Shown here piece by piece: positions 49,501 through 54,008 of a stretch of DNA of 64,000 nt. Every line of letters begins with the position of its first letter. Position 1 is the first letter of the stretch. This DNA is from Salpingoeca rosetta (taxonomy: Eukaryota > Protista > Choanoflagellata). A program made the position numbers and the translations under genes. Location: the NCBI GenBank assembly GCA_033442325.1, contig JAWQFM010000005.1, positions 890,107-954,106 of the forward strand. Direction: 5' to 3'. The notes beneath the pieces are model-generated. The model had not been told where the DNA came from, searched no databases, and saw only the letters and a program-made list of their open reading frames with translations.

Positions 49501-52500
49501 GGCACAGGCGTTAAAATGGGAGTATGTCAACGTCCTAGACAAAGTGGCAAGTTGCACCAACAGCGCAACTGAAAGAGCATGGACGAAAGCCGACGCACAT
49601 TGCTACATCCACGCAGACGCAGTGCACTTGCCTTGTGAATAATCTGCCTGATGGAGGGCGTGTTGTTCTCGAGAGCCTTGCAAACGGCACACACGGCGTT
49701 GTGCCGCGTCTCTTTGTGGTCGCTTTGCTGCTCATGGCGACAACGGGGCAAACCACAGGCCCAGGGGATGAAAGAGGACACAGATCAGAATGCAATGGAA
49801 GGCATAGCGTGCTGTGCCTTCGACGTGGGCAAAACAATTGCCAACTTCAGCAACAACTACAGCAACAACAACAGCCACAGCCACAGAAACAGCAACAGAA
49901 ACAGCAACAACCATGGCATGTGGGCATACGCACCAGGCAGATGTTGATGACGTTGTAGAGGCCGCTGTCGGCGAGAGCCTTGTACACGACGGGCTTGTCC
50001 ACAGATTGCTGGTTACCGCTCACCGTAAACACCTCAAGCAGAAACATGGCCTATGGAAAACGCACCATCAAATGCGCAACAAAACGCACAACGGCTGTGA
50101 GGGACGGAATGCCGAGCGACTGCTGGGGGGGGGGGGGGGTTCAGCGGCAGTAGAGACCACGCAGTACCATTGATGCCGTTGTGTGCCAAGGGCGCACAAA
50201 AGCACGCAACATTTATGCACGCGCGTGTATTGCAGGAACATATAAAACCACGGCGACCAAACAGACGTGCGGGCAAGAACAGCGGCCAACCTGCTTGCGT
50301 GTACGGTCCTGCGACTGGCCCGGGTCGGCGGACAGGATAGACTTGAGGTAGGTGGGCATGGTAACAAGCTTCTCCAGGATGGCGCCAGATGCGAAGATGG
50401 CGTGGGAGTCGAGGACAAAGGGGAGCTGGTCGTCGATGAAGCCGGCGAGAATAACGTCCTTGAGATACGTGATGTAATACAGCTGCCGGATGCGGAAGCG
50501 AAGATCGTCATCGTTCAACGGCTCAATCTGACACAACAGCAGTGACGCGTGAGCAAAGCGAAAAGAGTGTGCAGATGGTGTAAATTATTACCCGCTGTCA
50601 ACACGGAGACCCAAACACGTCACAAACACGCACACACGCACACAAACACAAACACAAACACACAACACGCGCACCTCCTGGAAACGGGTGTCCGAGTTGA
50701 GGTGCTCGCGGTGCTCCGTCTTGGAGCCGTCGGGCTTCGTCTCGAGCGTGCCGATGAACCGCTCAAGATACTGCGGCGGCGTCAACAACTGTGCAAACCA
50801 AAAAAAAAAGCGTCGGAAGGAGTGAATGTGGCACAAAACAGTCAGTGTGAGCAGTTTGTGAGGCATTGCACGGTTGACTACATGCACGGGTGTGACGTGG
50901 GAAAACGGGGAAAAACCAGTTGGTGTACCCGAAAAGCATTGGCCACAGCATACAGCAGGCGCCATCATCCGGGGCGGACTCACGTCAAAGAGCTCTGGCA
51001 TGCAGGAGAGAAGCATGACGAGGGAGATGTTGTAGATGGTGCCGAGCGCCTTGTCGTCCTCCAGGTCGTCACTGCCACCATTGTCATCGCGGTGCGAGGG
51101 TGAGAGGAACAAAGAGTCAACACGGCATGTGACCGAGAGGATGTGCAGGAACAAGCCGGCAAAGCAAACGCTATGCCAGAGCACGTGCGCAAAGCCGTGT
51201 GTGTGTGTGTGTGTATGTGTGTGTGTGTGTGTGTGTGTGTTACCATTTCTCAAACGTGTCGAAGAATGTGTCCACATGCGACAGCATCTAAAAAGCGAAT
51301 GTACGCACGGTTTGGCGTGTGAGTGAATGGCACACGGTCTAGACAACGTGAAGAGAAGCAACAAGTAAACATTGAAGTGCATGGGTTTGAGGTGCTCATT
51401 GTTTGCCACAGAGAGAGAGAGAGAACATGCATTCACAGAGTGCACACACACATACACACAACATGACAGTCCATGTGTAGTGCTTGGGTGTCTGGGACGT
51501 ACGTGGTGCCCAAATCCTTTGATCTTCATGAGCGCCTCTCGACGCATGTCCATATTCTGTCATCATGACAGTGTGTGTATGAATGCGTATGTGAGTGAAT
51601 ATGTGTGGGTCCGCAAGAGAAAAAGTGTGTGCGTGTGCAAGTGTGTGTGTGTGTGTGTTCGATTATGAGGCACTGCATGGCGATCGTGAAGCTGAAGCAA
51701 GAGCAAATTAATGCCAGCAATTCTCAACAGACAACGGTCAGAATAGCACGAGGCAGCACAGCTTGAAATACGGCCACGAATCCATGGCACATGCAGTACA
51801 CAAGAATCACGCAAAGCGGTGCCCACCTGTGTGGACATGGACTGCTGCCTGATGTCAAGCACCTCCGTCAGGAACTTGTCGTACGCATCCAAATGCCTAT
51901 CAAACAAGCATGGCGCACACGCATGCACACGTGGTGAGTACACACAGGGTGAGGTGGATACACGATGGCCCAACAAGAAGCGAATGGCACGCGCAACAAA
52001 CGTACGTGTGTGTGTGTGTGTGTGTGTGTGTGTGTGTGTGTGTGTGTGTGTGTGTGTGTGTGTGTGTGTGTGTGTGTGTGTGTGTGTGTGTGTGTGTGTG
52101 TGTGTGTGTGTGCGAATGTAAGGAGAATCGGGGGAGGGGGAACGTACGCGAGGTCTGGAGGGGGCAGGTCCACCGGGGTGAACAAGTTGTTGTCCGGCTC
52201 CCCGAGCATATCGTCATCGCTCGCCGTGTCCGCTTGCAGGAACTGAAGATGTGAATGGTCAAGAGTAGAAAAGGCGCAACACAGCACAGCAAAACAGGTG
52301 AGGTGATGCTGGTAGTGATGGCTGAAAAAGAGCGAGAAGACAAAACCAAACAATGTGCAAGTGCGGGGCCGACGCACTCACAAACCATACCACGCACATG
52401 TCTCCCCCCCCCCCCCTTCAAAAAAAAAAAAAAAAAAAACATTCATCCACAGAACAACACTCACTGTGCAAATGGCGTTTGAGTAGGCTGCACACGCGTC

Positions 52501-54008
52501 ATCGTCATTGAAGCTGATGGCAACCACCTCCTCTGGTTCGCCGTAGCCAAGGAGCACAAACGCCTGCTGAATCTGGCACGACCGCGCCTCGGTCAGGTGC
52601 AGGTCAAACAGTGTCTCTGTCGACGTGGCAAGCGAACAACGCAGGCCAAGGAGCACGGTGTTAAAGAGGTAGGTGTGTGTGTGTGCGTGCGCAATTGATG
52701 TCGGACAGAAAGTATTCACACAATCATGTACATTGCCGAGGAGTTTGCACCACAGCAGGACGACACCGCATTTCCCCCCCCCCCCTTTTAAAGCAAACCT
52801 GAGGAGTCTGTGGCGGTGATGGTGAGATGAAGGTTGTCTGCGAGGTCCAGGGAGATGGTGCCCTCGGGCTGCTCGTCCCACTGGTCGCCGCCCTGCTTGT
52901 AAAGCTTCACAGGACACGGCACCAGTGTTGCCTGAAGCTCCCGCGTCGCCTCTTCAGAGAGTGACGGCATCTCCTCGTGCTGCTGCTGCTCTTCAAGGCC
53001 AGGTGGCGCCTGCGGACCGATGATGGGGCTCTCGTCGCCGCGTAGACTGGACCGGTCGCCGCTCAGCACCGGGCGAGGGCCAAAGAACCCGTCATCCTCA
53101 CCGTCATCGTCCAGCCGCGTGGCAGTCAGGGCACCAGCTCGGCTGTCTCCTGCACTGGGGCCTGCATCGCGTGCACTTGTGGCTGGCTGCCCATGTTGTT
53201 GGGAGGAAGAAGCGCTGCTGTCCACGCCGTTTTCCTTGTCCGCGGACATGTCCATGGCTGTGGACTGCTCGGACGCGTCACGCTGCTGCTCACACTTTGC
53301 TTGTTCACTCCGTTGTCGTGAAGGGTCATTTGCGGTTGCGGCTGCCGGGGATATTCTGGTGTCAGCATCCTCGCGCTGTGTCTGCATATCACTCGTGTCA
53401 GTGGTATTGGCTTCGTCGTTGGTCGTGCTGTTGTGCGGTGTGCCAGTTGCATCGTTGCTGTTGCTTCTGTTGTTGTCATTGTTATCGCCGCCGTTGGTGT
53501 CGCTGTTGCTGTTGTTGGTGGTGGTGGTGGTGTTGTCGTCGGGGGTGTCGTTGTTCAGTCTGTTTTCAGGGCTGTCGCTGGGTGAAACAGCCGCAACAAC
53601 CTTGCGAACGCTGGGGAAGGTTGAGTCGAGGACGGCGAGCCATTCCTTGTGAGGCAGCCATGCGACGCGGTCGATGTTCTCGTCAGCCTGTGGGGAGATG
53701 GGCGGGCGCCCGAGCACAGACATGCGGAACCAGTGGGTGGTCTTGACGAAGCGGCGGTCGTTTTGCTCGTACTCGTGCACGGTCTCGATGATCTTCTCGC
53801 CGCGCTGCACTTCGGTCAGGCCGCACTCTTCCTTCACTTCTCTGACAGCACACTCCGGCACGGTTTCGCCCGCCTCCAGTCGGCCTTTGGGCAAATCCCA
53901 TTTGCCTGCGCGCAGCAGCCACAGAATCTCGCCAAACCCGTTCTCCACCCAGCCACCTGCGGCGGTGACGGCGACCTTGGGTCGCAAGTCGTTGCTCTCT
54001 GTCGCCAT
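46559..54008 (-). CDS. PPP4R3: Protein phosphatase 4 regulatory subunit 3 (SMEK/Psy2/Falafel) with an N-terminal Nudix hydrolase fusion (multi-exon)
   Basis: EVH1-like PVKLYKQGGDQWDEQPEG…QIQQ…VAISFNDDDACAAYSNAIC. SMK-1 domain HREHLNSDTRFQE|IEPLNDDDLRFRIRQLYYITYLKDVIL. HRYNMLTSTVLSIIEF; RFRKDGSMTEEEENYFSED; C-terminal LVSYDDDD. Start ATG at 54008 (MATESND) is inferred. Confidence 0.85.
53590..53985 (-). other. Nudix hydrolase domain at the N-terminus of PP4R3
   Basis: AAGGWVENGFGEILWLLRAGKWDLPKGRLEAGETVPECAVREVKEECGL contains a perfect Nudix box GX5EX7REUXEEXGU, followed by TVHEY…KTTHWFRM…PQADENIDRVAWL. No intron. Confidence 0.93.

Follow-up and report, generated by a model that had tools for sequence, protein, structure and literature searches.

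Does the choanoflagellate Salpingoeca rosetta carry a bacterial-type hydrolase on PP4R3, the targeting subunit of the phosphatase PP4? The question is raised by a 64,000-nucleotide stretch of its genome (contig JAWQFM010000005.1 of assembly GCA_033442325.1, positions 890,107 to 954,106; hereafter the window, whose own positions are used throughout), in which the original prediction, made from the letters alone, had seen a Nudix domain, an acidic linker and then the first half of an EVH1 domain of the PP4R3 type in one uninterrupted reading frame. From yeast to humans, PP4R3 is conserved as a targeting subunit that is not itself an enzyme. The minus-strand gene found here encodes the 1126-amino acid (aa) protein PTSG_01783 (EGD78808.1, XP_004997764.1, UniProt F2TYY4), and we consider it likely that this protein is a Bacteroidota-derived, probably active Nudix enzyme, resembling hydrolases of diadenosine polyphosphates (ApnA), joined by a disordered linker to the one PP4R3 that S. 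rosetta has.

The gene and its transcript

The frame is present exactly as had been claimed: it runs from stop to stop on the minus strand (54365..52788, 525 aa), its 5' part is a translated (CA)n repeat and its first ATG lies at 54008-54006. PTSG_01783 maps exactly on the window as 19 coding exons of the same strand. Exon 1 (54008..52799, 1210 nucleotides (nt)) is unbroken by introns and encodes Nudix domain, linker and one half of EVH1, including the predicted stretch PVKLYKQGGDQWD; the remaining 18 exons measure 44-277 nt. Within exon 1, the Nudix domain (aa 1-140, 53589..54008) is supported by its PF00293 match (aa 15-126), by its Nudix box (aa 42-64, 53817-53885), by the alignment of homologues and by an AlphaFold2 (AF2) model. 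The linker follows (aa 141-346, 52971..53588), and the last part of the exon (52799..52970) opens with M347, whose ATG at 52970 is a possible ancestral PP4R3 start, and holds the N-terminal half of EVH1 with Y370 and W377; the ATG at 53255, which had also been named as a potential downstream start, exists as well. The C-terminal half of EVH1, including L425, is supplied by exon 2 (52465..52616), and exon 3 (52148..52242), likewise defined by RNA and by the model, comes directly after EVH1. Exons 4-19 (46559..51896, stop codon at 46559-46561), placed by exact mapping and by PF04802, encode the PP4R3/SMK-1 and armadillo region (aa 500-978, E 1.2e-105, profile positions 4-497 of 497), followed by an acidic tail at the C-terminus.

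The protein itself is not new to the databases. A HMMER search with exon 1 among 1.84 billion representative proteins returned a single full-length identical match (P0102, 1126 aa), and PTSG_01783 is called a 'hypothetical/uncharacterized protein' at NCBI and a 'Nudix hydrolase domain-containing protein' in UniRef. The architecture is therefore already public under an automatic name, and is unstudied rather than unseen. The original prediction knew it from no characterised protein: we found indeed no other protein and no paper describing it, but the gene model had been deposited.

The whole of exon 1 is transcribed as one continuous minus-strand stretch. RNA reads were mapped to 52113-54094, between the flanking (CA)n repeats, from two stranded runs (X21 and X22), together with contigs of two others (X13 and X15), three studies in all; the stretch is present, whole or in part, in 20 RNA runs from six studies. 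In X22 the mean sense depth was ~36x over the Nudix domain, 44x over the linker (29-83x along its length) and 49x over the EVH1 part of exon 1, the corresponding values in X21 being 6x, 6x and 8x, and the reads were almost wholly in the orientation of a minus-strand RNA. The mapped reads showed no splice joint within 52799-54094, and inside exon 1 neither read starts nor read ends pile up; loose read ends occurred at exon borders only, with none of the polyA type inside the exon. The end of exon 1 at 52799, a GT donor, was set by RNA reads, and both following introns were spliced as modelled: intron 1 (52617..52798, 182 nt, GT..AG) through the joint 52616/52799 (15 reads in X22, three in X21, contigs of X13 and X15) and intron 2 (52243..52464, 222 nt, GT..AG) through the joint 52242/52465 (36 reads in X22, nine in X21, and contigs). 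EVH1 thus continues in frame across the introns, and the contigs from the two further studies (X13 and X15) tile the same exons. At the other end, depth was still 49x at the 54094 edge in X22 and one X13 contig overhangs this edge by ~60 nt, so that the 5' untranslated region, of which 54009..54094 is the minimum extent (24-49x in X22), reaches into the CA repeat. The argument that the fusion is no gene-merging artefact is therefore borne out by continuous RNA depth, by the lack of a joint inside exon 1 and by agreement with the public 1126-aa model. Transcripts beginning downstream of the Nudix region, a possibility that had been raised at the outset, are not evident as a read pile-up, and the Nudix region is covered by sense RNA.

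Two irregularities were seen in the reads. A frame-shifting 2-nt deletion at 53845, inside the Nudix box, is carried by four of 31 X22 reads (two start sites) and by none in X21 or in the contigs; an error or a rare variant probably accounts for it. Antisense reads reach ~10x in X22 at 53386-53519, where the linker is most repetitive (37-83x sense), and may result from cross-mapping from other low-complexity genes.

The domains and their relatives

The Nudix domain is intact, as predicted. It matches PF00293 with 59.7 bits (cut-off 21.1, E=3.9e-16), its Nudix box fits the consensus GX5EX7REUXEEXGU perfectly, with R56, E57, E60 and E61 present, and all 21 columns that are invariant across 65 sequences, including these four residues, are kept. 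The AF2 model built on the 65-sequence alignment has a predicted local distance difference test (pLDDT) score of 93.7, and nearly all of the PDB fold matches listed for it are Nudix enzymes. The best of them is the Aquifex Ap4A hydrolase aq_158 (3I7U), with template modelling (TM) scores of 0.78/0.84 and a root-mean-square deviation (rmsd) of 1.7; further neighbours are Chlamydia CT771 (4MPO, with Ap4A products bound), mycobacterial MutT1/Rv2985 and the Ap6A hydrolase Ndx1 of T. thermophilus. MutT1/Rv2985 is both a diadenosine polyphosphatase and an 8-oxo-(d)GTPase. A sequence search of the PDB yielded the same set of ApnA hydrolases, and the best matches overall (3I7U, 1VC8, 4MPO, 5GG5 and 9CXX; E 4e-9 to 5e-6, TM 0.67-0.84, rmsd 1.7-3.6) belong to this group, although ApnA hydrolases of known structure are only 24-30% identical to the S. 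rosetta domain. Judged from these structures, ApnA or other nucleoside polyphosphates are our best guess for the substrate.

The closest sequences point to bacteria. The best matches of the Nudix domain are standalone proteins of 133-215 aa with 40-57% identity, and those that are named all come from Bacteroidota (Flavobacteriales/Schleiferiaceae, Solitalea, Chitinophagales/Chitinophagaceae and Puia). When one genome each of 185,579 prokaryotic species was scanned, 78 of the best 80 loci, which are no census, were from Bacteroidota, the other two being from Rhodothermota and Balneolota. A quick maximum-likelihood tree places the S. rosetta domain together with the short forms from Bacteroidota (SH-like approximate likelihood ratio test 89, not starred), at the tip of an ordinary end branch (0.67 vs a median of 0.59). 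The Bacteroidota hydrolases align with it from end to end, with the same start and end and all invariant residues in common, and they stop where the linker begins. They are independent genes: two homologues (P0002 and P0004) lie in compact surroundings, which for P0002 are clearly bacterial, its neighbours being FtsH, RsfS and D-Ala-D-Ala ligase. The S. rosetta sequence, by contrast, has lost the stop codon and reads on into a eukaryotic gene.

Taken together, the Bacteroidota relatives, the end-to-end alignment, the kept invariant columns and the absence of introns speak for a gene that was transferred from a bacterium and became fused once its stop codon was lost. The S. rosetta domain has bacterial sequences as its nearest relatives, stands among them, shares one exon with host sequence and is transcribed. 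Acquisition from a Bacteroidota-type bacterium by horizontal transfer, and subsequent fusion, thus appears well supported by the sequence comparisons. Base composition was also considered: GC content at third codon positions (GC3) is 0.79 in the Nudix part, 0.78 in the host exons and 0.55-0.69 in the nearest bacterial homologues. Other Nudix-like matches in the 55.4-Mb S. rosetta assembly are limited to 27% identity or to a 43-residue fragment, and this type of Nudix is single-copy. The gene was not found in the accessible part of the supplement to a published list of S. rosetta horizontal transfer candidates. The same part of that supplement lists another, unrelated S. rosetta Nudix protein, PTSG_01963, with best matches in Alphaproteobacteria and the verdict 'indeterminate'.

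The segment that joins the enzyme to its host is a linker of the acidic, low-complexity kind that had been described: its 206 residues contain no Pfam family, and aa 141-344 have a net charge of -23, are 9% hydrophobic and are rich in S, D, T, A and N. A single FxxP-type motif, FFGP (aa 308-311, 53076-53087), lies in an acidic stretch of the linker ~55 residues upstream of EVH1; one such motif per 206 residues is not beyond chance. A predicted complex of EVH1 (aa 355-475) with the linker segment that carries FFGP (aa 293-330) scored 0.02, which speaks neither for nor against binding.

EVH1 begins at about aa 367, behind the Nudix domain and the linker and not at the extreme N-terminus. A single-sequence AF2 model of it (pLDDT 68) has eight strands and, at the C-terminus, a helix, and its two best PDB fold matches are Falafel (4WSF) and human PP4R3A (6R8I), with TM 0.70 and rmsd 2.7-2.8. 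In the Falafel EVH1 domain, Tyr12, Trp20 and the PP4R3-specific Leu70 are essential for the binding of FxxP/MxPP targets (PMC7776573), and their aligned equivalents in the S. rosetta protein are Y370, W377 and L425. The predicted assignment to the PP4R3 type thus holds, by modelled fold and conserved residues. Because the residues that bind FxxP/MxPP are kept, the PP4R3 part looks functional as a PP4 targeting subunit, and there is moderate support that it still acts as one.

This gene is also the organism's only PP4R3, since PF04802 matches this locus alone in a profile search of the assembly. A genome search for PPP4R2 (PF09184) gave one weak, sub-threshold exon match. With PP4R3, SMEK1-2, Falafel and Psy2 the S. 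rosetta protein has in common the PF04802 region (E 1e-105), the EVH1 fold with its Tyr, Trp and Leu, the acidic C-terminal tail and its presence as a single copy. In that family, however, EVH1 is N-terminal and there is no enzyme, whereas here 346 residues of enzyme and linker precede it. PTSG_01783 is thus a variant architecture of the PP4R3 family.

The proposed fused chain and its alternatives

We propose, with good support, that a bacterial Nudix gene landed just upstream of PP4R3, and that loss of its stop codon would then have created the fusion, a former spacer or 5' leader becoming the low-complexity linker. There is moderate support that the main product would be a ~125-kDa Nudix-linker-PP4R3 chain and, likewise, that its Nudix part may still be an active pyrophosphohydrolase, likeliest on diadenosine or other nucleoside polyphosphates. 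From a fused chain, a working PP4R3 part and an active Nudix domain we infer that the enzyme would be tethered to PP4, riding on the PP4c-R2-R3 holoenzyme, a step to which we give moderate support as well. Two properties of the frame bear on the first of these steps: (i), there is no ATG between 54400 and 54008, the Nudix ATG being the first downstream of 54400, and 15 further ATGs lie between it and M347, of which nine are out of frame (open reading frames (ORFs) of 10-117 aa); a scanning ribosome would therefore begin at the Nudix ATG and produce the fused chain. (ii), the 204 linker codons tested hold no in-frame stop, against three and 14 in the other two frames; even in this T-poor region, where stops are rare, the chance of such an open linker is only ~0.005, by shuffling and by composition.

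Several observations pull in the other direction. The evidence for the fused chain is at the level of DNA and RNA, and short reads cannot establish single molecules that join the Nudix and PP4R3 exons. The context of the Nudix start codon is weak (C at -3). Nudix depth is ~0.7 of the EVH1 exon depth, so that a minority of transcripts could begin inside the linker. As to the enzyme, no NCBIfam equivalog reaches its cut-off with the Nudix domain, all falling far below, and an ApnA substrate is therefore a guess from the nearest structures. As to PP4R3, the Pfam family EVH1_PP4R3 (PF22972) has no match on the full protein, on single exon pieces or on the joined EVH1 region, and the phmmer match to the EVH1 of human PP4R3A (6R8I) is weak (E 0.26), though colinear (chain residues 9-108); the domain is divergent enough in sequence to miss PF22972. 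As to origin, the tree contains no eukaryotic Nudix sequences, and the claim of a transfer rests on there being no eukaryotic proteins among the named best matches. Finally, the contigs of the nearest bacterial homologues are fairly GC-rich (0.54-0.58), so that base composition cannot date the transfer; GC amelioration as a transfer clock was dropped for this reason.

The alternative that survives best accepts the fusion as real and denies the Nudix domain any PP4-relevant catalysis: either the domain would be carried along neutrally, having come to be expressed by taking over the transcription unit of PP4R3, or it would bind nucleotides as a sensor, in the manner of NUDT9-H in TRPM2 channels. 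We regard this as possible. In its favour, the architecture was found in S. rosetta only. A length-limited search returned no protein of 619-1970 aa with this Nudix domain besides the query, and among the matches listed by an all-length HMMER search the 149 others besides PTSG_01783 measure 137-286 aa. The nearest PP4R3 clusters of the ESM Atlas (3348, 173 and 53 members) have PF04802 and PF22972 and no NUDIX, exon-1 peptides found no relative in the JGI metagenomes, no paper was found that mentions PTSG_01783, and the papers found that contain both Nudix and PP4R3/SMEK concern unrelated contexts. No other protein of Nudix-linker-PP4R3 architecture was thus found, though a proper search of other choanoflagellates was not possible; the fusion is apparently confined to one lineage, and is possibly neutral. 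The linker, moreover, is long and lacks any feature that would suggest a fixed geometry.

For a Nudix domain as a regulatory module there are precedents in choanoflagellate and animal TRPM2, the C-terminal NUDT9-H of which (also found in the choanoflagellate 'chanzyme') sits on a non-enzymatic signalling protein, where it serves as a ligand sensor and/or a slow enzyme (PMC11479946, PMC6461439). The TRPM2 domain belongs, however, to another Nudix subfamily (ADP-ribose pyrophosphatase), has another partner and is ancient and widespread, whereas the S. rosetta fusion is known from a single species. What argues against a passenger or a mere sensor is that the domain keeps every catalytic residue and every residue invariant in the family and that its branch length is ordinary, which fits continued selection on an enzyme. 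Even a neutral fusion would illustrate a route by which a bacterial gene, once transferred, can come to be expressed in a eukaryote: it reads into a gene of the host.

A second pairing of EVH1 and Nudix folds is known from the Dcp1-Dcp2 decapping complex, of which the original prediction had seen an echo. The echo stands at the level of folds, Dcp1 and Dcp2 being among the weaker fold and sequence matches, but not as kinship: Dcp2 has an N-terminal regulatory domain that binds Dcp1 and, behind it, a Nudix domain with Box B, whereas the S. rosetta protein starts directly with a 140-aa bacterial-type Nudix domain, its EVH1 is of the PP4R3 type and the resemblance is thus of superfamily level only. 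A relationship to Dcp1/Dcp2 was rejected for want of that regulatory domain and because the Dcp2 match, at 22.9 bits, lies below many bacterial enzymes.

Could the locus instead make two products? PP4R3 would then be translated from an internal start (M347, or M252/M254), reached by a minor transcript begun in the linker or by re-initiation, and the Nudix-linker part would act alone or the fused chain would be a minor by-product. M347 lies indeed at the place where canonical PP4R3 proteins begin, 20 residues ahead of the first strand of EVH1, and both the weak context of the Nudix ATG and the somewhat lower Nudix depth could be read in this way. We nevertheless find this unlikely: exon 1 shows neither a pile-up of read starts or ends nor loose ends of the polyA type, no stop separates Nudix from EVH1, the nine out-of-frame ATGs between the first ATG and M347 (ORFs of 10-117 aa) speak against leaky scanning, and the linker frame is open against a chance of ~0.005. 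An artefact, whether bacterial contamination joined to a host gene (the Nudix domain is of a bacterial type, and Bacteroidota are present as prey in S. rosetta cultures) or a predictor merging two genes, is effectively refuted by the sense reads and contigs that tile Nudix, linker, EVH1 and spliced exons unbroken in four runs from three studies; a Nudix GC3 that equals that of the host exons also speaks against it.

The preferred reading thus remains a Nudix enzyme fused to PP4R3, and the only PP4R3 copy of the organism would bear an enzyme domain derived from bacteria. Should the fusion be the form of the protein that works in the cell, this would be a clear case of horizontal transfer at the domain level into an essential host regulator, and whole-protein transfer screens can miss transfers of this kind. 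One may speculate further that the two halves are functionally coupled, the hydrolysis or sensing of a stress nucleotide (Ap4A/ApnA) tuning substrate recruitment or the location of PP4, with FFGP as a conceivable cis pseudo-substrate for the EVH1 pocket. We hold this to be quite improbable; if true, a horizontally acquired enzymatic input would have been wired into a core eukaryotic phosphatase of a close animal relative. S. rosetta is genetically tractable, and the function of Nudix-PP4R3 is therefore testable.

Surroundings of the gene

On the plus strand, a divergent neighbour runs from 55317-55760 onward; its product is a membrane protein of the TauE/SafE type (PF01925, E 1.9e-10) that has a long insert of poly-Asp. 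The spacer between the two genes (54400-55300) is probably a shared bidirectional promoter region. On the other side, the 3' end of the PP4R3 gene faces a convergent, uninterrupted open frame of 2029 aa on the plus strand (39676-45765), which encodes a Pecanex C-terminal domain (PF05041, E 4.4e-93). One of the 18 introns of the PTSG_01783 model, after exon 11, is of the GC-AG type (donor GCAAGT, 49626-49631). Microsatellites of the (CA)n/(GT)n type, at 54095-54278, 52006-52112 and 51197-51240 among others, occupy the 5' untranslated region/promoter and introns of the PP4R3 gene, and the longest of them, with 94 repeat units, lies just upstream of the start codon.

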